A stretch of 64,000 bases of DNA from the NCBI GenBank assembly GCA_964036045.1, contig OZ038378.1, forward strand, positions 196,788,001 through 196,852,000. The letters run 5' to 3'. Shown here in pieces: positions 1,048 to 34,249 of this stretch. How positions within the stretch are numbered: position 1 is the first letter of the stretch; every line of letters starts with the position of its first letter. Source of the stretch: Eutreptiella sp. 'Long Island Sound 2002'. Lineage: Eukaryota > Protista > Euglenida. Both the position numbers and the translations under genes were made by a program. Under the pieces are notes generated by a model. That model was not told the origin of the DNA and searched no databases. It saw only the letters and a program-made list of their open reading frames with translations.

Positions 1048-1115
1048 GGGGGTGGTCCAGTGGTGTATGCACTGGTCTATAAATTGGCTGACGTGGGTTC
1101 AATTCCCAAACCGAT
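1048..1115 (+). repeat. tRNA-derived (SINE-head-like) sequence
   Basis: TGGTCCAGTGG A-box and GGTTCAATTCC B-box at tRNA spacing. Stems are degenerate. Confidence 0.45.
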
Positions 1116-1464
1116 TTTTTTTGCATTTTTTGTCGCTTGTCTTGATGAGAAAATTGGTTTTCTATGCACAAACAACGCCTGCCGAAAGAAGATGAATGCA
1201 CACAGGCTTCCCATTTCCATCTCACTGTGTGCTGGGTGGGTGTGCAACCAACCAACTCTGATCTGCAACCAAAGCTGTCCTGCAGTAGTCAATCTGATGG
1301 GTCTTTTTGTGGGCAGTAAAAACACTTCATGGTGCCAATCTGAACAACCAATATAGAAAGAAAAGGTATTATCCAGTGTCCCAAAGGAAGTGATGCACAT
1401 CTTAGAGTGACGCCTCCAAATCAGGTGTCCTAGAATCTCAAGCCCCAACAAGTCAGCAGAACGA

Positions 1465-1615
1465 ATCGGCCAAATCACAGAAACCCCACAAATCGGCAGA
1501 ACAACTCGGCGGAATTCAGAAACCAAACAAATCGGCAGATCAAATCGGCGGAATTCAGAAACCCAACAAATCGGCAGAACAAATCGGCGAAATCGGCCGA
1601 ATTCGGCCGCCGATT
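1465..1615. repeat. Degenerate AAATCGGC(A/G)G tandem repeat; related copies at 825-875
   Basis: Repeated ACAAATCGGCAGA / AATCGGCGGA motifs. Confidence 0.7.
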
Positions 1616-2184
1616 TGGGGGCTGGGTTAAAAAACCACCCACCACCGGGGGAGCTGCGTCCACGGGGCAAAAACAGCAGATTTAGACAGCACACTGGCAT
1701 TTTTAGTGAGAAACATAGTTCGTTTTAACTCATTATCTGAAGTTTTGGACTGAGTAAGAGTCTGAGTATTTCCCTGTATGGGAACACGGTAGTTACTGCG
1801 GTCACCTTGGCCATCAGGGGAAATGAATCCAAAGTAGCCTACTTTTCGCACAGCGCGGGCACAGCGCACACAAGGGGCTGCTCCTGACGAAAGTGAGGTC
1901 CCACTGCCGGGCACTAGTGACATGTCCGATAGATCGCTGGTGCAGAACCATCAGCGCCTGCGTGAAGCACTGACACAGGTCCCCAGGGACGCCGAGGGGC
2001 TTGCGTACAGCACACTTCAGCCCTGATGATCAGTCATGCGCCACACAAAATGATACCCTCGATGGAGAGAGAGCCATGAAGGCAGGAGGACCCACCCGGC
2101 ATGGTCGTCCCCAAACAACATAGGGGATCCCCCGCTGCCGATACTGGCAGTGAGAGGGGGTTGGGGCCCAGGAAGAAGGTCAAC

Positions 2185-2322
2185 CTGCCCTGCAATGCCC
2201 TGCCCTGCCCTGCAATGCCCTGCCCTGCCCTGCAATGCCCCGCCCTGCGCCCTGCCCTGCCCTGCCCTGCCCTGCCCTGCCCTGCCCTGCCCTGCCCTGC
2301 CCTGCCCTGCAATGCCCTGCCC
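2185..2322. repeat. (CCCTG)n / CCCTGCAATG minisatellite
   Basis: Tandem pentamer. Confidence 0.9.
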
Positions 2323-2460
2323 TTCCCCCGGTTGGGACGTTGAAAAAAAGGACTGCAGTTGGTCGCTGTGAGGGGGGGGGGGGGCTGAAATTAGCACCGC
2401 TGCACTTGGGAACTGAATGCAGCAGCAGCGCCCGTGAGGAACAGGCGTAGACGGTCAAAG

Positions 2461-2890
2461 CAGGGGTGTCCTTAACGGAAAAAAAGAAAAAAAAAGTGTT
2501 CCGGTACCAGTTTTCCCAAAAAAGCCCGCAGGCACTCCATGTGCTCAACCATGGTTGGTGGCAGTGGGCGGTTGGCGGTTGGCGGTTGGCGGCGGTTGGC
2601 GGTTGGCAGTTGGCAACTGGCGGTTGGTGGCGGTTGGTGGTGGTTGCCCGCGGTTGGTGGCTGGCGGTTGGTGGTTGGAGGCGGTTGGCAGTGGTTGGCA
2701 GTTGGCGGTTGGTCGCCGCTGGCGGTTGGCGGCGGTTGGTGGCTGGCGGTTGGTGGCGGTTGGTGGTTGGCGGTTGGTGGCGGTTGGCAGTTGATGGGAG
2801 TTGGCGGTTGGCGGTTGGTGGTCCCTTGGGGCGGTCCTTAAGGGCTGTCCTTAGCCAAAAAAAAATTTCTCGTCCCTTAAGGACCCCCCT
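2461..2890. mobile_element. MITE-like element with GGTTGGC-rich core and GTCCTTAA-GG inverted ends; related pieces at 3170-3330 and 12340-12480
   Basis: CAGGGGTGTCCTTAACGGA versus reverse complement AGGGGGGTCCTTAAGGGA. Shared GGGCTGTCC(T/G)T motif between copies. Confidence 0.55.
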
Positions 2891-2977
2891 GGGTCAAAGA
2901 GCTGGTGCTGGTGCCTTGATACGGCAGGAGGGCCTTTGGAGCGTTTGGGGCACGAGAGCTGGGGGTAGCCACGGCGT

Positions 2978-3148
2978 TCACTCCTCCAAGTTCCCGTTCT
3001 CGTCGAGATCCCCGACCATGGGACTGGGAATGCGGTCCTCCCACTCCTCAGGGGTCTCTGCTCCCCGAGACGCCGCTCCTGGTTCCTTTTCCTCCAAATT
3101 GATGTCCGCGAGATCCCGGTCCTCACTGGTACCACGTGACCGCATGAC
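2978..3148 (-). CDS. Putative terminal exon 8 of the WD40 gene (VMRSRGTSEDRDLADINLEE...GNLEE*)
   Basis: Acceptor TTCGTGCAG|GTC, phase 0. Acidic composition continues exon 7. Ends in TGA. Confidence 0.6.
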   Translation of the reverse strand, partial: VMRSRGTSEDRDLADINLEEKEPGAASRGAETPEEWEDRIPSPMVGDLDENGNLEE

Positions 3149-3990
3149 CTGCACGAAGCCCGGATACCATGGTGTCAGGGCTGTCCGTAAAGGAAAAAAA
3201 TGCTCACGATTACTCTCCAACCAGCACCGCTTGCCTGTGAAGCGCCGTTGGTTACCACCCAATGTTGGCTACAATAGACTGCTGTCGGTTAGCCCCCCGA
3301 CCGTCGTCGGTTACCCCCCAAACATTGCGCCGTCCATGATCCACTGGCTCCTATGTCGGGCCACCCCGCTCCACCCTGTCCCCTCCCTGCTCCACCCTGC
3401 CCGTTCCTGCAACCCTTCTCTGTCCAACCACGCCCCACTCGCCGTGCTTCGCCCTGCCCCTGCCCCTGCCTGTCCTGCCATCCCCTGCCCTTATCCTGGC
3501 CTCCTATCTCTGATCCTCTCCGGCCCTGCCCTGCCTTGCTCTGCCTTGCCGTCGCCTCCCCTGCCCACCCTGCCCTTCCGAGATGTCCCACACCAACACC
3601 CTTCCGGACCACACACACACACTCTCTCTCTCTCTCTCTCTCTTGTAGTATACCATGTACTACAATGCAAACAGTGGGTGTACACTTGGACACACAGACA
3701 CACACACACACACACCACATGAAGGGGATCAAGAGCACCAACCCACTGAGGATCGCAGACGGGCAGGCACTGGTCAAAACAACTCGTCAGGCCACAATCA
3801 TACAAAAATCACACACACACATGCACAAACACACATGCACGTGCACGCACACACATGCGTGCATGCCCCGCCCCGCATCACACCGCCCAATCTCTACAGA
3901 ATGTGGCTGAGCATTGCAACTGTACCAGCTCCCGTATTCCGTGTACACGGCTTCTACCTACAAGTCTGGTCTGGTAAACGCTACAAATAG

Positions 3991-4160
3991 GGTATGACAT
4001 CACTGCAAACAAGATCTCGCAGAACCAAAAAAAAATAGGTTTTGGGTCAAAATAGAACCATGAGAGCTCACTGCAGTCCCAACACTGCATTTCCCATTGT
4101 AAAGTAAAATGGCAATTCTTGGTAGCTCTGTGAGGATCTTGTCTGCAGCGATGTCATACC
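3991..4160. mobile_element. 170-bp MITE-like element with ~30-bp terminal inverted repeats
   Basis: GGTATGACATCACTGCAAACAAGATC versus reverse complement of GATCTTGTCTGCAGCGATGTCATACC. Confidence 0.7.
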
Positions 4161-5282
4161 ATATTTCTAGCTCCTACCCCTTGGTGCGCCCCAACACTCA
4201 CCCCCACCCATCCAAATATACCTTCTGAAATCTGTTTTTGAGTTCCCCAGCCTCAAATTAGGGGGGGGGGGGGTGTGACCTAATTAAAAAACAGACAAAT
4301 GCAAACCAGAGGTAATGCACTCCACAGTCAGGGGGGGGGGGTTCCCCATTTGCCACCCAAAGCCCAGCCGGTGATCCTGCACCTTGGTAGATACACTGGC
4401 AAAGATATGTGGGGGTGTCACAAACAAGCACCAGCACGGCGTCTTTCCAGAGCGGGAGCCACAATGGGTCAGGTTTGCTTCACCGCAATTAGCTCCAACC
4501 GCGCCTGCCCCACGGTCTTCATTGCTCTCAGTTCAATGTTCCAGATCGTTGTTCTCTGTGCTTGCTGTCCAAGTGTTCAATGGCTGGGGTTGAGGGCCAA
4601 GGTCCCTTCCTCCCTGCGGCACTGTACCAGGTCAGCTGTCGCCTGTTGGGCTGTAGGTTGGCAAACATGCAGCCAGGCTCACGCCCGTACGCCTGGCCGT
4701 TTTCTATAGGATCAGGGGCGTACATGCAGGTCAGGGGGCGGGCACTTGCTTCTGCTGGCCCCACTCGGCCATGCCCTCCCCCTGTTTGCTGTTGTTGGAC
4801 CTTGGGCCTAAAGGCCTAGTGGTTTCTGGATAACATACAGAGTTACCCGGCACATACATGTGTTTGTTGGGGTGTGTAAGACGCAGGTCGTTGCTGTGTC
4901 CGTGAACACAGGGGAGCGAGATTCAGTGCGGGGGGGTACCACTTGCCGTTCATTGGGGTGGGGTATTTTCCATCTGGTGGCGGCCGCTGTCCGAGCGGTG
5001 GCGCACTTGGCGCCAGCCGCGGTGGCGCCAGTTCGAGCCCCGTTGCCGTCCGTCGATGGGTGGGACCTCCGATCGATCCGTTCGAGTACCGGTGGCGGCG
5101 CGCGCTGCTACAACTGTGTGGTGCCACGAGGTGTTTTCTTTTTGGGGCGGGGGTGTTCCTAGGTGCAAAAATAGACGAGACCTCCACCCGATCCGCCGGT
5201 ACCGGCGGTGGCGCGGGCTGTTGTAGGGGTGGGTGGTTCCAACGATGCCCACTAGAGAGCTCTACGTGCAGGGGACCCAGGA

Positions 5283-5352
5283 GCCGCAGCCCCCGGGTAT
5301 CGAACCCCCGCCTTGGACGACTGAAGACTACTGCTCTCGCTATTGGGCCGTC
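5283..5352 (-). repeat. tRNA-derived (SINE-head-like) sequence
   Basis: Minus strand GGCCCAATAGC...GGGGTTCGATACCC. Arms do not pair as in a functional tRNA. Confidence 0.4.
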
Positions 5353-6009
5353 TATGTCTCTTACCATATACCTAGCTCTGCCACTTGGTGGGGGGTGTTC
5401 CCGGGGTGGGGTTGTACTTGCGGCCGTGGTATATCCCGTGGGGGTGTGTGTATGGGTGTGTTAGAACAGGGGAGACATCTTTATCGGTGTGACAGACCGA
5501 GATCCTTCTGTGCTGCAGGTCGATGCTGTGTCCGTGGAGAGCGAGAGAGTGTCAGGGGAGAAAAATTCAATCCGTGTAGGCGATCTCATTGGAGGGGAGT
5601 GGGGAGCTGGTGCCCGAGATGGGGCCCAAGATCTCCAGTGGGAGGGTGGGGTGGAGCGGCCCGTGGATGGACACGGCGCCCGTGAAGGGGGGGTGCAAAT
5701 TTCGATGTCCACGAGACCACCGCGTGGCCCATGGATTTGTGGCGTGACATACTCTGTGTGGCGACAGCTGCGTTTGGGTTGTGGTGTGGTCGCTGGCTCC
5801 GGGGGGGGGGGGGGGTTGAGCAAGGGTTGCCCCCTCCTCCCCTCCCTTTCCTCACTGCTCGCCGCCTGCCATGCGGGGAGGGGGGTGCCGTGGTCCCCCA
5901 CCCCCTCCATAGCTGTCCACAGAACTGGAGCTTCAAGGTCGGACTCCGGTTCCGATTCCGACTCGTCCAGTGATTCCCCGCCCGCCAGTGACACCGTGAC
6001 TTGCCCCTT

Positions 6010-7610
6010 CAGCAGGGGGGAGCGCCGGCGTCCTATGTCAGCCAGCCGGTCCGCGTGCGTGTTACCATCAACGCCTATGTGCGAGGGGACATGCAGTCAT
6101 TGAATGGCTGTCCCTTGAGACTCAGTTTCGTGTAGCAGTTGGGTCCAGAGATCCACGTGTCCCATGGGCCCTGCCGATCCTTGCCAGTCATGGCGGCGCC
6201 ACTTCTGGGCTTTCCCCGTGATGCCCTAGACGACTAACAAGGTTTGGACTTATTCCTGTGCTGGACCGCATGCAGCGCCGCCCTGAGCTCGCCTCGGTTA
6301 TTCGTCTGCCTTTCCTCACGGGGAATGTGTATTGCGGTGTCCCGGGAATCCCCGAAGTACACCCCATAGCCCCCCACCCGTGCCACCATGGGATGGTCCT
6401 CTGATGATCCGTCTGTATATATGATTTCCCATCCTGCCTGCCTGTACTTGTCCACCAGCACCTTGTGTGACTCTGCCATTTGTGCGGCATATAGGTCCTT
6501 TTTCCGTTTTTTGCGTTGTGGCCGGTGGAGCTTGGGGGGTGACCTGCTGCCCACTTAATGTACCCGCGGGTGCGGGAGGTGTCCTGTGTCCTTGAGTTGT
6601 TTGATTGCCTGGTGCAGGAGTTGTGTTTCTTCGGCTATGAGGGTGGGCTGAGGGTGACTGGACCATCTCTGAAGTACTTGGAGCCATATGGAGAGGAACA
6701 AATCCCGGGAGGGGGGGGGGGGGACTTGAATTTGACCAAATTGCGCAGGCCCCACGAGGCTCTGACTACAGACTAGTAAACAAGACCCAAGGGGGTTTGG
6801 AGTGAGAGGGCCGGCTGCTCGACTAGGAGCTCTGTGGGGTCCGTTTCCTGGGTGTCCCCAAGTATGGCAGGGCCCATACATTGCACAGCGATGTGAAATG
6901 CCGCCGCCAAAAAGCAACAAGAAATCGGCGCATGAACTATGGTCTCCACATGCCCGTCCAAAGGAAATTGGGTGGCATGAGGGAGCCAATTTTTTAGCCT
7001 GTCTCCTACTGGTAGCTTCCTCCACAACGCCATCTGCATGAACGTGAGATCGCCCTGTGGCAGTCGCAGCTTGAGGAGTGCTTCCCAGGTTTCCTGTGTT
7101 TGCCGAGGGGGGAGGGGGGGTTGTGGGACATGAGATACCGGAGCATGACTCGGTTGTTCCACTGGGACCAAAACGTCGGCAGTGTCTCTTGGGGGGGGCG
7201 GCCATTCGACGGTTCCCAGGGGGTTGCCAAGCGCACTTGGTAGACTGGTACCCATGTGGGGGGGAGTGTGGCTCGCAGCTCCTCTGTGAGCTGCTCCAAT
7301 TTGCGGATGCCCTTTTTGATGAGGCGGGGGCAAAAGTAGGTATTGCCGTTTGTGTCCTTGAACACTGCAGAATGCCATGGTGACAGGGAACTGGCCTGTT
7401 GCGCCGTGGGGGGCAGTACAGGGGCTTGCTTGCGCAATAAGGAGTATGCTTTGCAGCTGGTGCCTAGGAAGGGGTAGCTGGCCCAGGGAACTGGTCCGAG
7501 CTGGAGCCAGGGGAGGTTGGACGCATCCAGTGGGATTCCATACCTCTCTGCCCAGAGCCGGGGGGGGGGGGGGTGAAGAGTGAGGGAGGAAGGGAGATTG
7601 GCTAGCCACC
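6010..7610 (-). mobile_element. 5'-truncated non-LTR retrotransposon relic (zf-RVT-like region followed by RNase H)
   Basis: WEALLKLRLP...FMQMALWRKLPVG...ETIVH..SC, then IYTDGS, GYGVYFG, TNNRGELRA and HVPSHIGVDGNTHADRLA. Frameshifted. Confidence 0.8.
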
Positions 7611-18060: not shown

Positions 18061-20451
18061 TCTCATGACCCGACCCAAACTAGATTCATTCCAAATCTAG
18101 AGCCCACACTAGCCAACAGCGCCCCACAGCAAGGGCACTATATGAGCTCTCCTCCCCCCAACACGACATCAATTCGCCGCACATCGGGCCAAGTAATCCC
18201 CCAGAACTCGTTGCAGCCAAGCCGGGAATCTATTTTCCGCCAACGCCCTTCAAACAGTAACCTCCGGCTCAACACGTTCAACTGGTCGCTTGTTGCCATT
18301 CATACTAGAGTTAGGTGTGTTAATTGCAATGGATGTAAACAACAAACAAAAATAATTTGAATTTGTTGATGAATGAGTGAAATTAGGGTTGCCCATGAAA
18401 CAACCCTTCCAAAGGGGCATGAAAGGTCGGTTTTAGGACTTTCGACTTTGGAGCTGTTGAGGCTGAAAATTGCTGAAGAAATTGTGCAAAAAGACACTGT
18501 GGGGCTGCAACGCATGCACTCTCATCTACAAAACTATTATTGTGCTCACTCCAAACACACAAACCAAAAAACGAACGGAAATCGCCCAATATCCCGTGCA
18601 TAGTTTGCCATCGGCCACTACAGACTGGCAGGGACTCTCCAAGCGGCTTCACCTAGTGGCGAAATCACACCTTGCAACTGAGCAGCTTGTGGTGGTTTCC
18701 ATGTACCAACTTATGAGCCGCTGTGCGATGTGCTAGCCCTTCCCAAACCATGCTCTGGACCCAACATGCAAGATCCAAAATTTCGCAGAACATGCGCCCA
18801 GTTTGCTGCCCTGGGATTGGTGATCCCTGATCCCTGTTGGCAACCCGCTAGGTGGGGATCGCTGCCATTTTTTGTCATGCTCTTCGTCTTTGACAGGAAG
18901 CACTCCAATTTGTCCCTTCTTGTGCACCACCGGGTCACAAAGATTGTCTACCGTCTACCTTAATACTCCTCGTGACCACCTCACAGAGGGGCAGGGTGTG
19001 TTCCACGTAGGCTACCGCAAATTCAAGGAACCACGGGTTCACTCTAGCCATATTGCATTCTTCATGCAATTCCTCCAATTGCAACTCGGTTCCAAGCCTC
19101 CTTGCCTCACCCCGCAGCCATCGCGAGTCACGCAAAAGCATGCACTACTTGCACACCATCAAGGGCACACGGCCCGATGCCATTTCCTTCATAACGCGAC
19201 CGTCTTAACAGAGCCCGTTGGTGCAATTCATCCACTAGGGACCACCAAGGGACCACCAAACACATTGTGCACAAGTTAGAAAATATATTTCCAAAACACA
19301 CCACCACAAGAGCAGGTGAATAAAGAGAACTATAAGTAGGTGAGTTTAGAGGACTGTACAATTCAACCACGCATCCCACCGGGGCCTCGTGCCACAGCCG
19401 AGGCGGTGGTGATTGCTATGGATGATTGCAGGCGCCCTCTAGTGGGCACATCATCATCCAGTGGGCGCGGTAACAGATGTTGCCGGTCAATGGAAAGGTA
19501 GGGGAAGGGGTGCAGCAGGGAGAAAGGGGCAGAAGCACGTGAACGAAGTGCAGGACTGTGGAGGATGACAGTGTGTTGTTTGGTCGGACAGACCCCAAAG
19601 TGCACCACAGGCAGGGGCTCCCTAACAACAAGAAACTAAGAACACTGTCACAGTATAGCCCCCCACCGACGCCTCAATGGAAGAGACTTCCATTGAAGAC
19701 AAGTCCGCTTCAAACCGTTCGATTATTCTCCCTTCAAATGCTGTCGGTCAACAACCGCCGGCAATAAATGTCCAATTGCCATCGGCCACTTATCGATCAC
19801 TGTCCGCCGGTTTCTTGGGACTGTCCAATCACCGTGAGGCATTGATTGCCCCACACGTGCCCTGCACGCCCTGCCCTGCCCTGCACGCGTGCTTTTGACC
19901 CTGTAACCTCCCCTCACAAGATGCTCCCCAATGGCTCACCACAGGAATGCATGCATAGGCACAAACAACACCACCATCAACAACACACTTCAATTCAACG
20001 ACACGGCCTAATAGCCCAAGTGGCAATAGCTCCAAGCTAAAGTTTTCCAATGCCACGCAAGTATGTTTGGAGAAAATATGAGTGGTCTGCAATACAAAGT
20101 ACACCAACTGTGCAACAAAAGGCAGCAGATTGTCGGTCCCTTCCGTCAACACAGCAACACAGCAACACAGCAACATGCCCTGGGGTGCAGATAAGGCCAA
20201 AAAGATGCCCCGTGTGCCCCACATGTGCCCCGCGCAGCAGGTTTCCCTCCACAGGTGTTTCTTAAGTTGCCTTGCACTCACCCCATCGCAGTTGCCTTCC
20301 AAGTGCAATCATCTTATCTCCATTCAGCATGCCCTCTTCTTACGACACCCTCGCGCCCCTCTCCATACTCAAGCCCCTGGAGGCGCGGATCATGCAACCC
20401 CCACCAATGTCACATCCGTCCCGGACCCTCAGGGTCAGAGGAGGGACACAC

Positions 20452-20784
20452 GTCGTCGTTGCTGTACGTGGCCACGATGCGGCTGCCAAACACGTTGTAC
20501 TGGCAGCCAGTGATGTGCGGCGAGTTTGCGAGCAGGGACCGCTCCCCACCGCCGAGCAGGTGCTCCGGGCAGAACCGAGCGACACATGTCGCGGTGAGCG
20601 GCATGGACCCTGCCCCGGACTGGGCGCCGGCTCTGCGCAAGTCCGCCACCCGGAGGAACTCATCGCCGCCCCCCACGGTCAAGAGATGGCCGTGCAGCGG
20701 GTGGATGGACAGGGCATTGAGGTCAATGCTGTTGCGCTTGAGGTGCGCCCGGAGGTCAATCACGATGTTGCTGGGGTCTGAGCG
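20452..20784 (-). CDS. DCAF8-family WD40 protein, exon 3 (RSDPSNIVIDL...GGGDEFLRVADLRR...IVATYSNDD)
   Basis: Acceptor CCACAG|CGC, donor GAC|GTGTGT, phase 0. Matches the DCAF8-type AVGGxDxFVRIYD and LASYNDEDIYLF repeats. Confidence 0.85.
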
Positions 20785-20953
20785 CTGTGGTGTGGGCAGT
20801 GGTGTGGGCAGGGCATATGGACAGGGCATATTGACAGGGCATATGGACAGGGCATATGGACAGGGCATATCTCTCAGTATGGTTGGGGATTGTGCAAACA
20901 CGGACGGTTTTTTGGGGGTCGGAGGTGGGGGTATCTGGGATATGTTCGAAAAA

Positions 20954-20954
<1 letters not shown>

Positions 20955-21045
<91 letters not shown>
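20955..21045. repeat. (TA)n microsatellite
   Basis: Pure TA tract. Confidence 0.95.
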
Positions 21046-21047
<2 letters not shown>

Positions 21048-21576
21048 ATTTTTTTTCGATTTCTTGCAGGTACCTTTGATGGATCCCCCCCGGCGACCAG
21101 GCGCCGCGGGGGGTACAATGAAACCCTGGCCGGGGGGCAGCCGGGGCCTGCCAGGGCCGCGCCCCCCGCGACATTTGGACAGGCCACCCGCGGCAGCAGC
21201 TCCTACGGGGGCTGTGGTGGCGGCGGGTGGCCGCAGCGTGCTGCCCCAGTGAAGCCCCGGGGAGCAGTATATCAAGCGGTACGGTGTCATGAGTAATACA
21301 AGAGATGGCCCAAAAGGTGAAACGGGCAAGGTGCATGTAGTGTACAATGCATGCAAATTGTTGTGCAAAGTGCTTGCATGGTGCGCGTGTACCAGTGCGT
21401 GCATGGACAGAGGGGGCAGGAGGAGGACGGGGGGGTGGGGTCAGGGCGCAAGGAGGCAGGACCCCGAGCAGCCGGGCACAGAGGTAGAAAGGTGAAGGGT
21501 GGGGCAGGGCAGAGTATGCCCCGTAAAGTGTTGTGCATAGTGTCCTCGCGTAGTGTTGTGCATCATGCACGTCAGT

Positions 21577-22900
21577 ATCTCCTCCACCCTGGAGAAGCCT
21601 TCAACCCTCTGGTTTTGGCTGACGATCCTGACACTTTCGCTGAGCTGAAGGTGAAGGAGATCAAGAACGGCTGCTTGGTTATATTCTCTGTGTTCGGCTA
21701 CTACGTGCAGGCCATCGCGACAGGAGAGGGTCCTGTTGAGAGCTGGGCCCCTCACATCGCCGACCCATTCGCCGTGAAAGGTATGACCAATGCCAATGTT
21801 ACCCTGTTCGCTTTTTCTCCTGTGGCCATGTTCGCCACCGCTGCCTGGTATGGCCCTAAGCGCAACAAGTGGTTGGGCCCATTTTCTGATGCCTCCTCCC
21901 CTGACTGCCTCACTGGTGAGTACCCTGGTGACTACAGTTGGGACGCCGCCGGTTTGGCTGCTGACCCTACCACCTTCGCCGCCGCGTACCATGAGGCCGA
22001 GTTGACCCACGCTCGTTGGGCTATGTTGGGCACTTTGGGCTGCTTGACCCCTGAGTTGTTGGCCAAGTACGCTGGTGTGCAGATCGATGAGCCTGTGTGG
22101 TTCAAGGCTGGTGCTCATATCTTCCCTGAGAGCGGTCTGGACTACCTTGGCAGCTCAAGCCTGGTGCACGCCCACTCCATCCTTGCTGGCAGGCCTTTTG
22201 TGTGCAGGGTGGTCCGCTGCACGAGCATCTACATCTGCTCCACCCTGGCGAGGCCTTCAACCCTCTGGTTTTGGCTGACGATCCTGACACTTTCGCTGAG
22301 CTGAAGGTGAAGGAGATCAAGAACGGCTGCTTGGTTATATTCTCTGTGTTCGGCTACTACGTGCAGGCCATCGCGACTGGAGAAGGTCCTGTTGAGAGCT
22401 GGGCCCCCCACATCGCCGACCCATTCGCCGTGAAAGGTATGACCAATGCCAATGTTACCCTGTTCGCTTTTTCTCCTGTGGCCATGTTCGCCACCGCTGC
22501 CTGGTATGGCCCTAAGCGCAACAAGTGGTTGGGCCCATTTTCTGATGCCTCCTCCCCTGACTGCCTCACTGGTGAGTACCCTGGTGACTACAGTTGGGAC
22601 GCCGCCGGTTTGGCTGCTGACCCTACCACCTTCGCCGCCGCGTACCATGAGGCCGAGTTGACCCACGCTCGTTGGGCTATGTTGGGCACTTTGGGCTGCT
22701 TGACCCCTGAGTTGTTGGCCAAGTACGCTGGTGTGCAGATCGATGAGCCTGTGTGGTTCAAGGCTGGTGCTCATATCTTCCCTTAGGGCGGTCTGGGCTA
22801 CCTTGGCAGCTCCAACCTGGTGCACGCCCACTCCATCCTTGCTGTCGCGGCCCGCCAGTTTGTCCTGATGGGTGCCTTTGAGGCCTACCGTGTGAAGGGT
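21577..22900 (+). repeat. Near-identical 656-bp tandem duplication of LHC type-A unit
   Basis: TTCAACCCTCTGG at 21600 and 22256. Identical ORFs at 21790 and 22446. Confidence 0.9.
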
Positions 22901-23429
22901 GGTCCTCTGCGCGTTGATCTGTATCTGCTCCACCATGGTGAAGCCTTCGACCCTCTAGTTTTGGCTGACGACCCTGACACTTTCGCTGAGCTGAAGTTGA
23001 CGGAGATCAAGAACGGCCGTTTGGCTATATTCTCTGTGTTCGGCTACTACGTGCAGGCCATCGCGACTGGTGAGGGTCCCGTTGAGAGCTGGGCCTCCCA
23101 CATCGCCGACCCATTCGCCGTGAAAGGTATGACTGGCGCCAATGTTACCCTGTTCGCTCCTACCCCTATGGCCATGTACGCCACCGCGGCCTGGTATGGC
23201 CCTGAGCGCCACAAGTGGTAGGGCCCAAACTCTGATGCCTCCACCCCTGACTACCTCACTGGTGAGTACCCTGGTGACTACGGTTGGGACTTCGCCGCAT
23301 ACCGTGAGGCCGAGTTGATCCACGCATGTTGGGCTATGTTTGGCACTTTGGGCTGCTTGACCCCTGAGTTGTTGGCCAAGTACGCAGGTGTGCAGTTCGA
23401 TGTGTCTGCATGGTTCCAGGCCTACTGAG

Positions 23430-24540
23430 TGTTTAACAGTGTTTAACAGGTGGCCAAGGTGCGTGTTGTGCGACGTGCTTCGCAACCTGTAATGCATCGT
23501 GCTTCGCATAGAGCGCGAGAACCACCGGAGGGGGCAGAAGCAGGGCAACCAGAAGGCAGGAGAAACAGCAACACAGGTGCCCAAACAACGGGCGCGGAGA
23601 GGGAGAGGGAGGGGCGAGGGGACGGGTTTAGCTATGCACATTGCTCGCACAGTGCGTGCGTAGACAGAGGGGGCAGGAGAAGGACGGAGGGGCGGGGACA
23701 GAGTGCCAGGAGGTAGGACGCCGCACGGCCAGGTGCAGGGTTGAAGGGTGGGGCAGGGCAGGGTGTGCCTCGTATGGTGTCACGCGTAGTACCTGTAGTA
23801 ATGCACTGGCCTGAGGTGCAGCACGGCCGCTGGGCTATGTTGGGTACACACTGGTGCCTGACCTCCGAGCTGCTGCAGAAGTACAGTGCAATCGGCAATG
23901 GAGCCAGCAAAGGTGTGTGGATCAAGGCTGGTGCCTCCACCCCTGACTACCTTACTGGTGAGTACCCTGGTGACTACGGCTGGGACGCCGCCGGTATGGC
24001 CGCAGACCCAACCACCTTCGCCGCATACCGTGAGGCCGAGTAGATCCACACTCGTTGGGCTATGTAGGGCACTATGGGCCGCTTGACCCCAGAGCTGTTG
24101 GCCAAGTACGCTGGTATGCTATTCGATGCGTCTGCGTGGTTCTAGGCTTCAAGGTGTTTAACAGGTGGCCAAGGTGCGTGTCGTACGACGTGCTTCGCAA
24201 CCTGTCATGCATAGTGCTTCGCGTAATGCGCGAGAACCACCGGAGGGGGCAGAAGCAGGGCAACCAGAAGGCAGGAGAAGGTGAGGGCAACAGCAACACA
24301 GGTGCCCAAACAACGGGCGCGGAGAGGGAGAGGGAGGGGCGAGGGGACGGGTTTGCAACGCACATTGCACGCACAGTGCGTGCACAGACAGAGGGGGCAA
24401 GAGAAGGACGGAGGGGCGGGGACAGAGTGCCAGGAGGTAGGACGCCGCACGGCCAGGTGCAAGGGTGAAGAGTGGGGCAGGGCAGGGTGTGCCTCGTATA
24501 GTGTCACGCGTAGTGCCTGTAGTAATGAACTGGCCTGAGG
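23430..24540. repeat. ~720-bp duplication of non-LHC GA-rich spacer interleaved with LHC fragments; a related spacer is at 21385-21570
   Basis: GACAGAGGGGGCA blocks at ~21405, 23663 and 24386. GTGTTTAACAGGTGGCCAAGG at ~23440 and ~24155. Confidence 0.8.
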
Positions 24541-26720
24541 TGCTGCACGGCCGCAGGGCATACTCTGGTGCTTGACCCCTGAGCTGCTACAGAAGTACAC
24601 TGCCATCGACAATGGTGCCAATAAAGGTGTGTGGTTCAAGGCTGGTGCCATGGTCTTCGAGTTTTATGCCTTGAACTACATGGGTCCCCCCGTGTTGGTG
24701 CGCGCCCAGTCCATCCTTGCCGTGTTGGCCCGCCAACTTGTCGTGATGGGTGCCATCGAGGCTTGCCGTGTGATCGGTGATCCATTCGGTGGACGAGACC
24801 TTGATCTGGTGTGCCCTAGTGGCAAGTGATTTAACCCTCTGGGTTTGGCCGACGACCCTGATGTGGCTGCCGAGCTGAAGGTGAAAGAGATCAGGAGTGG
24901 CCGTTTGGCGATGCTCTCCAAGTTCGGCTACTATGTGCAGGCTGCCGTCACCGGCCAGGGCCCTGTTGAGAACTGGGCCTCCCACATTGCTGATCCATTT
25001 GCGGTGAACAGGTTGACCCTTGAGATTGCCACCCAGTCCACGCCATCAGCTGCCATGTTCGCAGCTGCTGGGAAGAAGCAGGAGGCCGCCCCCAAGGTGG
25101 ATTTGTCTGGCTGGTATGGCCCTGACTGCAAGAAGTGGTTGGGCCCTAACACTGCAGGCAGCAGCGTCCCAGGCTACTTGACCGGTGAGTACCCTGGTGA
25201 CTACGGTTGGGACAGCGCTGGGCCTGCAGCAGACCCTAAGGCCATCAAGCGCCTCCACAAGGTTGAGGTGCTGCACGATCGCTGGGCTATGTTGGGTACT
25301 CTCTGGTGCCTAACCCGCGAGCTGCTACATAAGTACACTGCCATCGACAATGGTGCCAATAAAGGTGTGTGGTTCAAGGTTGCTGCCATGATCTTCGAGT
25401 TTTATGGCTTGAACAACATGGGTGCCCCCGTGTTGGTGCGCACCCAGTCCATCCTTGCCGTGTTGGCCTGCCAGCTTGTCCTGATGGGTGCCATCGAGGC
25501 TTGCCGTGTGATCGGTGATCCATTCGGTGGACGAGACCTTGATCTGGTGTGCCCTAGTGGCAAGTGATTTAACCCTCTGGGTTTGGCCGACGACCCTGAT
25601 GTGGCTGCCGAGCTGAAGGTGAAAGAGATCAGGAGTGGCCGTTTGGCGATGCTCTCCAAGTTCGGCTACTATGTGCAGGCTGCCGTCACCGGCCAGGGCC
25701 CTGTTGAGAACTGGGCCTCCCACATTGCTGATCCATTTGCGGTGAACAGGTTGACCCTTGAGATTGCCACCCAGTCCACGCCATCAGCTGCCATGTTCGC
25801 AGCTGCTGGGAAGAAGCAGGAGGCCGCCCCCAAGGTGGATTTGTCTGGCTGGTATGGCCCTGACTGCAAGAAGTGGTTGGGCCCTAACACTGCAGGCAGC
25901 AGCGTCCCAGGCTACTTGACCGGTGAGTACCCTGGTGACTACGGTTGGGACAGCGCTGGGCCTGCAGCAGACCCCAAGGCCATCAAGAGCCTCCGCAAGG
26001 TTGAGGTGCTGCACGATCGCTGGGCTATGTTGGGTACTCTCTGGTGCCTAACCCGCGAGCTGCTACAGAAGTACACTGCCATCGACAATGGTGCCAATAA
26101 AGGTGTGTGGTTCAAGGTTGCTGCCATGATCTTCGAGTTTTATGGCTTGAACAACATGGGTGCCCCCGCGTTGGTGCGCGCCCAGTCCATCCTTGCCGTG
26201 TTGGCCTGCCAGCTTGTCCTGATGGGTGCCATCGAGGCTTGCCGTGTGATCGGTGATCCATTCGGTGGACGAGACCTTGATCTGGTGTGCCCTAGTGGCA
26301 AGTGATTTAACCCTCTGGGTTTGGCCGACGACCCTGATGTGGCTGCCGAGCTGAAGGTGAAGGAGATCAGGAGTGGCAGTTTGGCGGTGCTCTCCAAGTT
26401 CGGCTACTATGTGCAGGCTGCCGTCACCGGCCAAGGCCCTGTTGAGAACTGGGCCTCCCACATTGCTGATCCATTTGCGGTGAACAGGTTGACCCATGAG
26501 ATTGCCACCCAGTCCACGCCATCAGCTGCCATGTTCGCAGCTGCCGGGAAGAAGCAGGAGGCCGCCCCCAAGGTGGGTTTGTCTGGCTGGTATGGTCTTG
26601 ACCGCAAGAAGTGGTTGGACCCCAACATTGCGGACCGCTATGTTTTTGATTACTTGACTGGTGAGTACCCTGGTGACTACGGTTGGGTCGGCGCTGGGCC
26701 TGCAGCAGGCCCCAAGACAT
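24540..26720 (+). repeat. Three near-identical 738-bp tandem copies of LHC type-B unit
   Basis: GAGCTGCTAC at 24581, 25319 and 26057. Shared TGA at 24827, 25565 and 26303. Confidence 0.95.
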
Positions 26721-27109
26721 ACGGGCCAGCACGTGGGTTGCATCACCATCTTCAATCTCGTCTTGTGCCCATGCTTGCTGCTTTGTTTCTTGGTTGCTGC
26801 AGTGCTGCCCCCCTAGGCATCGTGCTTGCTTGTTGCAGTGCTGCTGCTCTGCCATGCCTTGCCCCTTACCCCCGGCGAACAAACGGACCAGCGTCCGTCG
26901 CCGTTGCTAATGCTAATGCTCTGCAGTTGCCACTGCCCCCAAAGCCTGGTTGGCCGGTATCCCCGGTCCTCTGGGTCCTCCGTCATGCTGTGGGCCACCT
27001 CAGGCAGCCCTGGGACCCACTGGATCGAGCAAGGCAGGAACCACCTGTCGGTGCAAGATGCCCGGTAACTCCAGTAGACGGCATGATAAGTGGTTATGAC
27101 TATGACTAT

Positions 27110-27245
<136 letters not shown>

Positions 27246-30031
27246 ATGTTTGAAATATGTCCTCAAAAAGGGCTTTTGGAGATGTATGGATTCAGAGGGG
27301 GGGGGGGGATCCGGAGTCATATCTTTTAGAAAATTGGCCGTTATGGATGGCGGTTTGGGGTGGGTTTTTTTGCCTAATCTGGTCAGGCTTCGGAGAGACT
27401 GCACTGCACCACAGGTATGTGGCCCATGATTGTTTTTGAACCACTTGTTTTGATATCCTAGGATTTTTGGAAACATTTGCGCACACACAAAAGAGCAGCA
27501 AAGCACCAACACCGCCAGAAATTGACCTCACTTGGCCCTGATTGCCACTTTTTCCCACTTGCCACACCAGTGTGTCAATCTCCAGGCACCCACAGCACGC
27601 ATCCGGCCTGAAAACCAGAAATTCCCAAATCATACCATCAAACCACAACCCAACACTCTGAAAATGGATTCCCCACCCCAAAAATAGGGGGGAGGGGGTG
27701 GGTGCCCAACTAAACAAGAAAAAGCGGTACCAGTGACCACCATGTTGCCATGTCACCATTTCTTCCCCTGCCAGCAGTCTGCCAGCAGCAGCCAAAAATG
27801 GCCAAAATTTCAACCAAAACAAGAAAATGTCAAACACATCATCAAATGGTGAGCTGAAACCTTCCGAAATAAATTCCCCACCCTCAAAATAGGGGGGGGG
27901 GGGGCAGGGAAGTAGTAGAAGGGGGGGGGGGGTCTGAAGGGGGCGAGGGTTGGCTGGGACCCCCCTCCTCCTAGGGTGCCCAACGCAAAAACGGAAAAAA
28001 GTACTTTTTTTATTCTGCAAAAGGGGAACTGCCCTTTCTTTTTTCTGCAGCACACCGAGTTCGTAATACATTGCAAGAGGCAGCATGCTCATTTAGCGTC
28101 ATTCGGGTTTATTCAGGTTCATGCACTTCCATTCAGGGTCCACTCAGGTTCATTCAGCGTCGTGTCAATTGTCATCGGAACTCTCCTCGGAAGACATATC
28201 GCATTGTCCATCAAATGAGCTAGAGAAATCTGTGCCACTGGTGTCCACACCGCTGACATCCTCATCACTAGACTGAGAGTCTGGTTCTGAGTAATATGCA
28301 GGGCTATCACACCTCGCAGCTATGCACAAAACAGTCTGCTGCAATGCCAGAACCCGCCTTTGCAAAAAAAAAACGAGCAGTCATTTACGCCTGATTGTAG
28401 GCTGTGCCTCTCGCCGCGTCTCACTGAAAATGTCACACTGAACTGCTGCAATCAGGTCCTGAACTGTGACAGTTTCCACTGCCTTCTTAACAGGGAAGAA
28501 AAATCCATGTTGTGTCCTGCGATGCAATGGGACACAGCAGGGAACACAGTGCCAGTCGGCCTGCAGACAGCCCCCACATTTATCATGTACAATTACACAT
28601 TAGAAGGGGGGGAGGGGGCAGGGGGGTGTACCCTGCCCTCCTCCTACGGTGTATGGTCATTCTAATACTTTCCTTGGGGGACCCTCATCACCCCAGAACT
28701 CCCAAACTTGCAAAACTTCCCAGCCAAACCCCTCCGCCTTGGCACATTCTGAATGAGGCCAAGAGATATGGACGGGGGATATGGACAGGGCATACGGACC
28801 GGGCATATGGGGAGGCCCATCTGTGCCAATGCTGTCTCAGAATGCACAAAAGGGTTTAGGATGCTTCAACAATGGCTTGGACCGGCACATGTGTCACCGC
28901 AGAGGGGACTGAGGAATGGGCAGGCCCCATGCCCGTTCAACTGCGGCAAACACACATTCTCGTGAGTGACCCCTTGTGTGCCACATTGCACACGGGCTCC
29001 AGCAGCGCTTGAGACAGCACCACGGTAAGCGTCCATGAGATGGGGGTCGGGCTACGGCCAACGTCGGAGGGCTACCACGCTTGTACACAGGGGCTAGTAC
29101 GGTTGAGGGGACTGGCAGGGGACTATTATAAGGGGGCGGGGAGGGCATCAACAGGTCGATCGGCTGAACTGGGTTTTCCAACCTAAGGCCCACGTAACGT
29201 TCCAAGGAATACTGGCCGAATGGGGCCAGCAAACAGCAGGTACACCGAGGGACTGACCTCTGACCGGTATGTACGCCACTCACCCGGTAGAGTCCAAGCC
29301 CAATCGTAAAACCCAACGAGAACAGTCCATGACAAGTGTACATATGGAAGGTAGGGCAAAGCAAACATCGGCGGAAGCACCAGGACAGTCGCCTGGTAAA
29401 AAACCGGGGTGAGAACGATGAACAATGGCTGGAAGTGTCAATGGCGGACATCCCAGTGGGTTCAGCACTGGTGAAGGTCACCGACACATGACACACAGCC
29501 ATTCAGGGACAGAGGTATTCTCTTGGGGGGGGGGGGGGGAGCCCTCTGTATCACACGAGATCGTGGACGCAGTATCCACTTCACTCCGGGGTCGACTGGA
29601 CTGGTCGCTCGTTGCCACACTGAGTGGGCTGGCTCGTCCTCCATCGGGACCAATGTGTCCAATAGCCAACAGAAGCGCCCGGTGACATTGATGATGTCTG
29701 GATTGGCGTCTGAAATTTGTGGCGCATGGCACCCACCACTCTGGGCGCTGTGTATTCGCTGACCCCTCTCTGGGGTGTATCACTGGTCGACCTGCCCATC
29801 CTCTTGCGTATGCTGGCGGAGGGGGGTCTGGGATCCAAAAGTTTGTGTACCAAAAATGGCCTGACCAGATTCCAGGCCAGGGATGGGGTTAGGACCAGAT
29901 TCCCGATTGTAAATTTCCTTCTTTCCCACGATGGTCACTTTGGTCTGGGGGGGGGGGGGGTCCAGGGGGGGGTCCTCCTTTCGTGTACAGCCATTCTAAC
30001 ACTTCCCTGGGGACCGGGCGTCAGGCAGTAC

Positions 30032-30316
30032 CTTGACGTGCCGGTTCGAGTCCCGGCGCAGGTCAAACAGGCGCACCGTCCCGTCGCTGCCGGCCGTCAG
30101 GAACACGTTCGGGGACTGGGGCAGGAACGCCACCTTGTGCACGCGCTGCTCGTACCGGACGATGCAGTGGACGACGTGCCGCTGCACGTCCGTCAGACGC
30201 ACGCAGCCGTCCAGCGCACAGGACACGATGAGGCTGTTGTTCGCGCAGGGCACGAACTTCCCGCAGAAGATGTTGCCGGTGTGCCCACTGACGATGTTAC
30301 TGACGAGGCGCAGGTT
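30032..30316 (-). CDS. DCAF8-family WD40 protein, exon 2 (NLRLVSNIVSGHTGNIFCGKFVP...TAGSDGTVRLFDLRRDSNRHVK)
   Basis: Two WD40 repeats. Acceptor CTTCTGCAG|AAC, donor AAG|GTACTG. Joins exon 1 in frame. Confidence 0.85.
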
Positions 30317-30551
30317 CTGCAGAAGTGGGGGTTCCGGGTCCGGGAAGGGGTCTGGAGACGGGAGGGGCGAGGCAGGCCCAGGCAGGCCACACAAGCCACA
30401 AGGGGCGACAGAGACGGCAGGGGGGCGCGCCTGCCAGGGGCGCGGTAAGCCCCGGCGCAGGAGCCCAGAGAGGCCCACGCCGGGCCCGGGGGAGGCGACA
30501 GGGGCGACTGCGAGTAGCCAGCGGAGGGGGGGAGGGGAGCACACGAGGGCT

Positions 30552-31430: not shown

Positions 31431-32335
31431 TGCAGATTGTATGAAATTTTACGTTTGGGTGCTGGTGGCAGTACAGCAGAGGTCGCCACATGTGTGAGGA
31501 GGGGGGGGGCAGCAACCGGGTGCTGGAGTCGGAACAGTTGTGCCAGGGAAGGGGTGGGAGAGCAAGGCGTCCTTCAAATCCGCAGAGGGACAACAGAGTG
31601 GAGTAGGCGGCACAGGATGGGGGGGTGGAGTGATCAAGAGGGACGGGCGAGTGACTGGGCAGGGCAGACGGGCGGCGGCGGGAGGGAGGAGAGGCGAAGG
31701 GTAGCGCAGCCCGGAGGCCATCAGCCCCCCAGCCTTTCCCAGGCATTGCACCACACGCCACACTCAGAATTTTGGAGGGGGCCGATCGGCTGGTCACAAC
31801 CACATTTCAAACCCGCTTATTGCACAATGGGGCGCCATTCCCCACCACACGCACTGTACATGACTGCACAAACTGGGACTCAAAATACGGCTCCGCCACC
31901 GATGCCACCCAGTGGACCCCCTTGGCCCCCAAAAGGTCGTGACCCAGGGTCGCTCCAGCGTCACCACCGAACAGTGTTCCGGAGGTCGCCTCCCTTCCAT
32001 TGGGTGAGAGGGCCACATTACCCTTGAAACACATTGGGAGCGTTGCTATCACGAGTTGTTCTAATGTCCAATGAGTTTAAAATCAGCAAAAAGGTCTTGC
32101 CGCGATAAACTGTCGGCAGTGTCTCATTTCGCTTCAACAATACGTAGACGTGGGCACCCCTTCTGACTTGGTTGTTGGTCATGGTCGGGGGACCAATAGA
32201 AACCAACTGCAGCACCCCCATCGCCGATGTGTTGAAGGTGTTTTCGTTCACGGTACAGCCGCTTGCCCTCAGTCGGCCTCCTACACAGCAGGCACTGCAG
32301 CTCCCAGACCCATTTGATTGATGCCGGAGAACAAC

Positions 32336-32596
32336 CTGCTCCCATTTCCAAATGTTAAGGTCACAGTCGTCGCTCCCGCTCACAAGGAGGCTGCCATCCT
32401 CCGACCAGCTGACGGTGTTTACGCATCCCGAGTGTTTGTACAGGCGCTTGTGCAGCCGCAAGGACTTGACGAAGGCTTTGCTCTGCTGCAGCTTTCGGGT
32501 GTGCTGCGTATTCGTGATTGCTAGGGTCCCGTCGACTTGGGTGCGCCGTTCCCTGCTCGTCAACAAATTGCTGAATGCCGGTAAAGGGGGGCCCAT
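32336..32596 (-). CDS. DCAF8-family WD40 protein, exon 1 (MGPPLPAF...HSGCVNTVSWSEDGSLLVSGSDDCDLNIWKWEQ)
   Basis: WD40 motif GCVNTVSW...SGSDD...IW. ATG at 32596 follows a pyrimidine-rich CAG. Donor CAG|GTTGTT at 32335, phase 0. Confidence 0.8.
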
Positions 32597-34249
32597 TCTG
32601 ATTTCCTGAAAATGAGATTGAATGAGCAGTGAAGGGGATGCCCTTCGGAAACCCCAGCTGCAGGGGACTGGCGCCGCCCCACAGGTTGGTGTTTGGTGTC
32701 GAGGCAGTGTTTGGATGGCGCGGGCCCGGCGGACTTCTTTTTGCCACATGTCCTCGCATTCAGCCCCCAAATCTGACTGCCAAAAGGAAGCCCAAAAGGA
32801 GCCAAAAAAAAAGGCTTCCATGCCCTGAAAAGACCCTGGAATCAACGGCCAGAATCCGCTGTGGGAGAGTTTGCGCGCAGCGCACGCATGGCGCCCATTA
32901 CTGGGGTGAGGATACGGGATCCCATCTCAATACCACCCACCACCCAAACCCTCACATGCATGGCCCCGCAAAGCTGCGAGAAAATGATGCATTTGGGGCT
33001 GGCCACTCGAAAAAGTTCTCAAGGCTGGCTTGCCTGGCCATGGGAATGATTGCAACCCTCGGGCAGGCGCCCTTTGATAGGGGTGTGGGCTGTGCTGGTG
33101 GCAGGACACAAGGCTGCACCCTTGCTGGTGATGAGGAGGGTGGTGACGGAGATGATGGCAGAGGTGATGGACTACAGATGGGAGCCTCGATGGGGGCACA
33201 GGGGTGCTCGCCATTTCGGGGGATCACTTCCACGAAGTCATCACTGCACTCTGATGGACCCTCGATGGTAGCAGGTACACGTTACCCCATTTTGGTGCAC
33301 ATTCCCGGGTTGTGCATGTGTAGCACACTTGTCATGTTGTAGTCAAATCCTGGCCACAGGATGCACAGACAGGTCATAGCTCAGACTGCTTCCGCTTCTC
33401 ACGTATACACACTGCTGGGGGGTCAATTTGTGTCTTGACCCTTTCTGCAGGGGGGACCAGTGAATATGAGGGGCGGGGGGTAGGGGGGAGCACAATGGGG
33501 GCACGCATATGGCAGGGCATATTGGGCAGTACAATGGGGGCAGGGATATGGGAATGGATGCAGTCAACAGTGTGGAGGAAGGCATGCGGGCAAGCATATG
33601 GGCAGCGTGGGGCACGCGGGGGGGGGGGGGGGGCACGGTTATTAGCCGCAAGCAATATACAGGGGGGGGGGGGGGCTTCGCCAGGGGACAACTTCCCGGG
33701 GAAAACTTCGCCTTTCCAATTGGTGAGGAAATTTTTCCTGCGGAATGTTTTTGCGCAATTTGACAATGACAGTTGGTTGACAGTGACAGTGATAGGTTGT
33801 CTTGCTTGTCCCATCTCGGGCTCTCTCTGATGCGCCAAATGGTTTGCTTCCCTGAATTTCTCAAGTGTTACCTGCCTATGGCTTCTGTGTTTTAGGGACA
33901 GAGCTATGGCACTATGCTATTTGTTTTTTGTCCCAGCCATTGCATGTTGGGCAGCTGTACGTTATGACATGTGCACCAGCGATGAAATGAAAAAAATGGG
34001 GGACCACCGCAAAAAATACCCCACTGCACACCTGAAAAGATAAAGAGCAAGGCCCAGGAACTCCAAATTGTCCACAAGGAACCAAGGGTTGGGGGTGTGA
34101 CGAAATTTTCCCCGAACGAAATGTTCCCCTCCGGTGTCTGATGGCCCTGCATCAAAATTGGAGGTGTGATGAAGTTTTCCCCTGACGAAGTTGTCCCCAG
34201 GCGAAACCCCCCCCCCCCCCGTGTAGGCAGCGCAGAACGGCAGGAGGAT

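Follow-up and report, generated by a model that had tools for sequence, protein, structure and literature searches.

The window, by which we mean the whole 64,000-nucleotide stretch analysed here, carries at 21577-26720 on its + strand some seven incomplete LHC units, which belong to two types and have euglenid polyprotein linkers between them, and it raises the question of how such an array came to lie within a host intron and whether it has a role there. A first-pass annotation had read it as a one-off pseudogenic retrocopy of an LHC polyprotein mRNA and as a possible source of regulatory antisense RNA. Our analysis points elsewhere: the segment 20955-27247 is very probably one intronic copy of a non-autonomous non-LTR retrotransposon of the RIME/NARTc kind, made up of LINE ends and a dead LHC cargo.

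Content and decay of the LHC array

The two unit types and their linkers were borne out by Pfam, tblastn and repeat periods, and the linker sequences quoted in the first-pass annotation are present in the translations of the array. Six of the eight + strand ORFs in 21351-27253 match PF00504 (Chloroa_b-bind; Pfam E-values from 1e-13 to 4e-29), the domain matches in the array being partial. Using an intact LHC polyprotein of the same genome as tblastn query, the intervals 21579-23422, 23813-24142 and 24473-26734 were matched with 57-74% identity. About 2.8 type-1 pseudo-units occupy 21577-23422 (+) with periods of 656 and 690 bp, as seen by repeat analysis, Pfam and tblastn, and are ~78% identical at the nucleotide level to an array at C17:48.99 Mb that is intact. 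The type-2 pseudo-units at 24526-26769 (+), identified by the same three approaches, follow a 738-bp period that is repeated three times within 24526-26720, the last unit being truncated.

The array is not seamless and is interrupted by two non-LHC inserts of ~375-390 bp and a rearranged fragment, all on the + strand. Insert 1 (23423-23812) was found in all family copies by repeat and copy comparison, and insert 2 (24154-24525) is its duplicate at a spacing of 715-724 bp (repeat families D9, D11 and D13). Between them, at 23813-24153, a type-2 helix-1 fragment is joined to a type-1 N-terminal fragment (tblastn; repeat families D5-D7). A reading of these inserts as introns or UTRs of LHC genes was rejected, as they are unmatched in 30 intact LHC loci and helix 1 is duplicated across each of them.

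The proposed pseudogene status is confirmed by a frame change near 22190-22244 and by in-frame stops at 22784-22786, 23219-23221, 24041-24043, 24827-24829, 25565-25567 and 26303-26305. These lesions lie inside conserved LHC segments, 15 nt from the next conserved motif, and conserved residues have been lost as well (for example NGRLAM to NGCLVI). Each + strand frame of the element contains 35-100 stops, and no targeting presequence precedes the array, in agreement with the first-pass annotation. Neither the intact PF00504 frame nor the presequence expected of a functional LHC gene is present, and the array is dead. The type-1 frameshift is found family-wide and the TAG at 22784-22786 is private to the window copy, whereas every type-2 unit carries the same in-frame TGA after ...GGK, which is common to nearly all copies and units. 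The copies have the same internal order. As the frameshift and the principal stops recur throughout the family, the source RNA was already non-coding.

Element ends, partner LINE and dispersal

The array is the cargo of a dispersed 6.3-kb element, 20955-27247, bounded by (TA)47 and (TA)67. The left tract (20955-21049, identified by TRF) forms the 5' boundary, where homology between copies starts in a six-copy alignment. A motif search revealed a spliced-leader relic at 21045-21058 (+), TCTATTTTTTTTCG, corresponding to the 3'-terminal 14 nt of the spliced leader of Euglena gracilis (PMC4778363, PMC5654406); TATTTTTTTTCG occurs once in the window against 0.13 expected occurrences. It is followed by a 182-bp 5' leader (21059-21240, +), which alignment showed to be common to an autonomous LINE of ~21 kb, and by a leader remainder (21241-21576, +; repeat families D10 and D12) that is neither LHC nor LINE, having no match in the 30 intact LHC loci or the sampled LINE copy; its part 21393-21542 repeats the 3' part of both inserts. 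Downstream of the array a 343-bp 3' module (26770-27112, +), also aligned with the autonomous LINE, ends in ...GGTTATGACTATGACTATGAC and is 98-99% identical to 39 other copies. The right (TA)67 tract (27113-27247, TRF), where homology between copies stops, represents the tail of the element and/or a split target microsatellite. One old copy has the (TA)n tail and lacks the 5' (TA)n, and it is conceivable that the 5' tract was copied along with the element and does not derive from the target. With (TA)n on both flanks target-site duplications are unreadable, and none is evident at L063, another copy. No LTRs or flanking direct repeats of the element were found apart from a shared 13-bp minisatellite, the end alignments contain no TIRs or Helitron termini (5'-TC...CTRR-3', 3' hairpin), and Rfam gave only sub-threshold noise, located in the (TA)n tracts.

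The relationship to the LINE holds at both ends: 21045-21240 is 88% identical over 196 bp, relic included, to positions 176-371 of the LINE copy C1:34609800, and 26770-27112 is 90.5% identical over 343 bp to its positions 20623-20970, with (TA)n following in both, although these identities rest on one sampled copy that may not belong to the true partner subfamily. This ~21-kb LINE matches PF03372 (APE-type endonuclease) and PF00078 (reverse transcriptase) in Pfam, its reverse transcriptase is similar to those of R2Bm and human L1 ORF2p (E 1e-13 to 1e-16), and the sampled copy has a stop between the two domains. Like the LHC element, it has a remnant of the host spliced leader encoded in the DNA at its start and a (TA)n tail at its end. 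The element itself lacks both enzymes, its scanned + strand ORFs matching only PF00504 in Pfam. Of the partner LINE it has ~200 bp from the start and ~340 bp from the end, and in place of the coding interior stands ~5.5 kb of LHCII polyprotein sequence that is scrambled and was already dead.

Exact markers, which replaced first-look candidate counts (265 to 6945) that are not mutually comparable, were then counted in the 2.28-Gb genome. They gave 2543 LINE 3' ends (terminal 36-mer of the 3' module), 617 occurrences of the 5' leader marker and 195 of the LHC-to-tail junction (26727-26766), so that at least 195 copies of the LHC element exist, which contradicts a one-off event. Seven of eight sampled 3'-marker sites are 3' parts of the LINE, and at least seven loci have their 5' and 3' markers 20.3-21.2 kb apart. 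An apparent head-to-tail tandem at L053 was rejected, being really an adjacent LINE 3' end, and a SINE-like 'family B' was likewise discarded after it had resolved into 5'-truncated LINE copies.

The copies have sharp ends at both (TA)n tracts and unrelated flanks, and each retains between 5 and 24 nt of the spliced leader (14 nt for the window copy, 24 nt at L063 and 5-16 nt in others, with different flanks), which argues for separate RNA-mediated insertions. At 86 genome sites the element leader directly follows 19 nt or more of the spliced leader, against none in a reversed control, and at least seven of the 86 are LHC copies. Rare copies keep unspliced upstream sequence: L078 and L079 read ...TTGTCCCCAGAG followed by ATCTCTTACAGG, with the AG acceptor exactly at the junction, and in outron-bearing copies ...CCCCAGAG stands directly before the leader. 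Thus what marks a non-autonomous non-LTR element (LINE 5' end, 3' end and tail, endonuclease and reverse transcriptase only in the partner, dispersed independent junctions) and what marks a leader-bearing retrocopy (a DNA-encoded 5' remnant and an AG acceptor at the junction in unspliced copies) are both present in this family.

We infer that a master locus is transcribed and its RNA trans-spliced, and that the endonuclease and reverse transcriptase of the LINE copy this RNA at a chromosomal nick by target-primed reverse transcription. The (UA)n tail of the RNA may pair with chromosomal (TA)n tracts, which would explain why such tracts are found on both sides. Acquisition of the LHC cargo was probably a single event, either a template switch to abundant LHC mRNA or a rearrangement at the master locus, and the window copy would then have inserted antisense into the DCAF8-like intron.

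Spread at the DNA level, by segmental duplication, by recombination of circles via (TA)n or by a TA-targeting DNA transposon or Helitron with captured fragments, is the alternative to which we give the most credence, and we still regard it as unlikely. It would fit the (TA)n on both sides without a readable target-site duplication, the mostly full-length state of the observed copies, the arrangement of some of them tail-to-tail across one (TA)n tract and the TIR-bearing repeat that often adjoins such tracts. However, TIRs, LTRs and Helitron termini are all missing from the element body, leader length and flanks vary between copies, some of the old copies lack a 5' (TA)n, and both ends are those of a LINE encoding endonuclease and reverse transcriptase. 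Two specific versions were rejected: capture by a Helitron or TIR element, as the 3' end is not CTRR, there are no TIRs and the 'TC' after the left (TA)n belongs to the leader relic, and circle integration by (TA)n recombination, as copies with a full leader and without 5' (TA)n exist.

The host intron and the source of the RNA

The antisense position within a host intron, as claimed by the first-pass annotation, was upheld. The element lies in a ~9.3-kb intron of a - strand DCAF8-like gene, and its two flanking exons, each searched singly, correspond to successive stretches of DCAF8. The downstream exon (20446-20739, -), encoding part of a DCAF8-like WD40 protein, has 9u7t_B (DCAF8) as its sole significant phmmer match (residues 370-454, E 2.6e-5). 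The upstream exon (30044-30301, -) with DCAF8-like WD40 repeats corresponds to residues 271-360 of the same protein (E 8e-13) and reaches 34.6 bits for WD40 in Pfam, and a further upstream exon (32348-32449, -) encodes the first WD40 repeat with 33.8 bits, both Pfam scores being above the cut-off.

This position raises the possibility of an exapted regulator, in which intron-borne antisense LHC RNA from several copies would form dsRNA or siRNA against LHC mRNAs. The element is indeed antisense in a transcribed-looking gene and shares 44 exact matches of at least 21 nt, the longest of 61 nt, with the 30 intact LHC loci. Nevertheless, overall identity to intact LHC sequences is 60-78%, the copies decay neutrally, as the private TAG illustrates, and the orientation in the intron is as expected of any LINE insertion, so that such a function appears highly improbable. 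Any dsRNA or siRNA potential of these matches would belong to the family at large and not to this locus. In its broadest form, to which we give an equally low probability, the ~200 LHC copies, many of them presumably intronic and in either orientation, would jointly give antisense LHC-like RNA and from it small RNAs tuning the LHC polyprotein mRNAs. If true, the light regulation of LHC in Euglena would partly work via a domesticated retrotransposon cargo. The locus itself is an ordinary intronic repeat insertion and not a bespoke antisense regulator, and no function is needed to explain it.

As to the source of the copied RNA, the spliced-leader relic at the 5' end upholds the RNA-mediated origin proposed by the first-pass annotation, but not an LHC mRNA as template. 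A single processed pseudogene, derived from one LHC polyprotein mRNA that was reverse-transcribed into the intron, would account for contiguous LHC units with linkers and no recognisable introns, and the relic would indicate its RNA intermediate. The relic leads into the LINE leader, however, instead of the 5' UTR or presequence of an LHC gene, the 5' regions of the intact LHC loci being unmatched; the 3' end is the LINE module with (TA)n instead of an LHC 3' UTR with poly(A); and at least 195 copies are alike in internal order and lesions. The missing introns are a weak argument alone because open frames as long as 4424 aa, free of introns, occur in intact LHC arrays of the same genome. Taken together, we find the processed pseudogene barely credible. 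A working LHC gene with its stops and inserts hidden in unconventional introns deserves the least credence: a passage in PMC2920757, citing Muchhal and Schwartzbach 1994, describes non-canonical introns in Euglena Lhcb genes and the two inserts do sit at equivalent places, but the stops and the frameshift so close to conserved motifs, the helix 1 duplications, the lost residues, the missing presequence and the stops in every frame all speak against it.

Relation to known elements and significance

The favoured reading, a LINE-end element with LHC cargo, has its closest counterparts in RIME/ingi of Trypanosoma brucei and NARTc/L1Tc of T. cruzi, likewise euglenozoan non-LTR pairs: the short member has both of its ends in common with an autonomous LINE, which encodes the reverse transcriptase and an APE endonuclease. 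The shared 5' part of the trypanosome pairs is Pr77 (PMC1874656, PMC8190864). In comparison to RIME and NARTc, the LHC element shares 196 bp (5') and 343 bp (3') with its LINE, is 6 kb long with ~5.5 kb of captured host-gene sequence, and has a (TA)n tail instead of poly(A). Its shared 5' end starts with a spliced-leader relic, whereas L1Tc transcripts are unspliced. A leader remnant encoded in the DNA is also known from dinoflagellate retrogenes with relict DinoSL, where this 5' remnant of the trans-spliced leader marks retroposition of processed RNA (PMC6050394, PMC5585692). Each dinoflagellate case is a lone retrocopy of an ordinary gene, and many are functional, whereas the euglenid element is non-coding, has LINE ends and reaches ~200 copies.

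Host gene fragments are also amplified as passengers of mobile elements in L1 transduction and template-switch chimeras, in SVA and in Pack-MULE-type capture. The LHC cargo differs from all of these in being a multi-unit polyprotein array between LINE ends, which is neither 3' transduction nor capture by a DNA transposon. With the Euglena LHCII polyprotein genes (Koziol and Durnford 2008; Muchhal and Schwartzbach 1992/1994) the array has the unit structure, the linkers and the PF00504 matches in common, but it has no presequence, its units are partial and scrambled, and stops and a frameshift are shared between copies. We found no published description of an LHC-carrying LINE-end element in the literature.

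In summary, the outcome is deflationary for the locus itself, yet the family indicates that trans-spliced RNAs have been copied back into a euglenid genome on a large scale. The host leader has become a heritable 5' tag on the LINE and its derivatives and may serve as a marker of retroposition comparable to DinoSL in dinoflagellates, and the (TA)n tracts are indicated as tails and/or landing sites of the 21-kb LINE. Furthermore, a LINE-end element has amplified a photosynthesis gene array to ~200 copies, which probably explains a large part of the LHC-domain matches in the genome, of which there are more than 2600. As many such matches are thus probably supplied by the element, gene-family counts and the annotation of LHC 'genes' in Euglena assemblies should be treated with caution.

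Dispersal of the element and its LINE-derived ends

The first-pass annotation had proposed a single retrocopy of an LHC polyprotein mRNA, a reading we had to abandon since the array (21577-26720) lies in a dispersed 6.3-kb element (20955-27247) with dozens of same-order copies and with both ends derived from a LINE. Using an insert of the array, the type-2 LHC units and both boundary regions as queries against the 2.28-Gb assembly (2317 contigs), in which the window spans C1:196788001-196852000, we found these copies on many chromosomes and with 90-99% identity. Homology begins where (TA)47 opens, at about 20955, and stops where (TA)67 closes, at about 27247, and alignments of six left and six right ends showed sharp borders with unrelated outer flanks. 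Neither TIRs nor LTRs were detected in the element body by repeat comparison and end alignments. Across the right arm, 39 other copies match the window copy at 98-99% identity, and across the left arm identity is 97% with one copy and about 90% with most of the rest, which places the window copy in a minor subfamily.

Seven of eight sampled sites with the 3'-terminal 36-mer have only the last ~345 bp in common with the window, the upstream sequence being different, and the eighth has ~190 bp in common. At seven or more loci 5' and 3' markers are paired 20.3-21.2 kb apart, and one such unit (C1:34609800-34631000; L080-L082) proved to be a non-LTR retrotransposon of ~21 kb that has a leader relic and is tailed by (TA)n. 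It starts with (TA)n followed by TGTCTATTTTTTTTCG and the leader, carries an ORF1 of 2373 aa containing a zinc finger of the CCCH type, then an APE-type endonuclease (PF03372) and an RT ORF of 1857 aa (reverse transcriptase, PF00078), and ends with the 3' module of the window element and (TA)n; a single in-frame stop is located between endonuclease and RT. For the RT, matches to R2Bm and human L1 ORF2p have E values of 1e-13 to 1e-16, and the seven sampled 3'-marker sites align with the 3'-terminal 1.2-1.7 kb of the LINE copy. The window element is 88% identical to the LINE 5' end over 21045-21240 and 90.5% identical to its 3' end over 26770-27112, and between 21240 and 26770 no match to the sampled LINE copy was found. 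Allowing up to 2 mismatches, we counted 2543 3' ends, 617 5' leaders and 195 LHC-to-3'-module junctions genome-wide (0 in the reversed controls), and the surplus of 3' ends over 5' leaders fits a loss of 5' parts by truncation in LINE copies.

The (TA)n tracts of many element copies are adjoined in either orientation by a ~1.4-kb repeat 'X' (L052:1-1500, L055:1-1500 and right flanks of L059-L062, all stretches of the same genome). Its ends are inverted (...GGGGAGAGGGGTGTAGTAA / TCCTCTAATCTACA...) and its interior holds tandem repeats of 162 bp; its position suggests another element with a preference for (TA)n. Another abundant repeat of the GGGCCAAAACGCGT... type lies beside old copies in both orientations (L063:7700-8001, L065:1-290).

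Spliced-leader relics at the 5' end

The spliced leader seen in this genome is identical to that published for Euglena gracilis, ACACTTTCTGAGTGTCTATTTTTTTTCG (PMC5654406), of which the 3' 12 nt TATTTTTTTTCG are conserved (PMC4778363). The element body starts with TCTATTTTTTTTCG (21045-58), the last 14 nt of this leader, which has one exact match in the window vs 0.13 expected. Genome-wide, at least 19 nt of the spliced leader are fused to the element's own leader, the 5' sequence directly after the relic, at 86 sites vs 0 in the reversed control, and at least seven of them can be assigned to LHC copies because an LHC-junction marker follows 4.5-5 kb downstream. The older copy L063 (C1:126.05 Mb) retains 24 nt of the spliced leader with no (TA)n upstream and a 3' tail still of the (TA)n type, and six other old copies with differing flanks kept about 5-15 nt. 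Such variable 5' ends within one family would mean repeated, independent copying of trans-spliced RNA. At two further loci, L078 (C1:31564300-31564700) and L079 (C2:48979600-48980000), the spliced leader is absent and the outron, unspliced upstream sequence ...TTGTCCCCAGAG, behind (TA)n, directly precedes the element's leader; the AG acceptor therefore sits exactly at the spliced-leader joining point. Both may represent master-type loci or else derive from RNA that was not trans-spliced.

The LHC cargo

Six of eight + strand ORFs within 21351-27253 match PF00504 (Pfam, E 1e-13 to 4e-29), and 21579-23422, 23813-24142 and 24473-26734 align to an intact LHC polyprotein of the same genome with 57-74% identity. 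Type-1 units have periods of 656 and 690 bp and type-2 units a 738-bp period, three times, and the linkers that the first-pass annotation quoted are present in the translations, so that the proposed two unit types with euglenid linkers were confirmed. The proposed pseudogene status also holds, as the reading frame changes near 22190-22244 and the array is interrupted by six in-frame stops; across the element body every one of the three frames contains 35 to 100 stops. The array is not seamless, being broken by two non-LHC inserts (23423-23812, 24154-24525) and a rearranged piece (23813-24153). A TGA after ...GGK in type-2 units and a type-1 frameshift are common to nearly all copies including L063, and only the window copy carries the TAG at 22784-22786. 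Given the shared lesions, the cargo was dead before the element spread.

Unit number differs greatly among copies. Elsewhere in the genome, about ten type-2 pseudo-units in tandem, repeating every 738 bp and 90% identical to the window, are found at C13:42227048-42234418, an intact LHC array with an open frame of 4424 aa at C9:43682042-43695781, and more than 30 LHC units (~1446-bp period, a 243-aa frame each, ~800-bp spacers) at C15:9198488-9250342.

Host intron and proposed mechanism

Host exons were searched one at a time. On the - strand, 30044-30301 scores above the Pfam cut-off for WD40 and matches DCAF8 (9u7t_B) residues 271-360, the only significant match of 20446-20739 is to DCAF8 residues 370-454, and WD40 is matched again by an exon at 32348-32449. 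These exons belong to a DCAF8-like WD40 gene whose introns are long (regions 20413-20802, 29999-30328 and 32021-32926). The flanking exons agree with the antisense position claimed before and place the element in a predicted intron of about 9.3 kb. A 13-bp tandem repeat TGGACAGGGCATA occurs inside this intron on both sides of the element (20805-20870 and 28766-28810). Between the element and 30 intact LHC loci there are 44 exact matches of at least 21 nt (longest 61 nt), and thus pairing with intact LHC sequence is possible. The window copy is decaying and nothing distinguishes it from roughly 200 others; the regulatory dsRNA role suggested for it is very improbable.

No paper on an LHC-carrying element or on leader-headed LINEs in Euglena was found in the literature. 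The closest known cases for the LINE-end element are RIME/ingi and NARTc/L1Tc, together with dinoflagellate DinoSL-relic retrogenes. Anatomy, shared ends, the endonuclease/RT partner, variable leader relics and copy numbers are direct observations, to which we add a model in which a master locus would be transcribed, its RNA trans-spliced and LINE proteins would perform target-primed reverse transcription, with the (UA)n tail pairing with (TA)n tracts. The LHC sequence was probably captured once, via template switching or rearrangement at the master. In every relic-bearing copy that was inspected in detail the relic is followed by ATNTCTT, and none of them starts at the next downstream CAG|G, a pattern that a few outron-bearing masters fit better than re-splicing of daughter copies.
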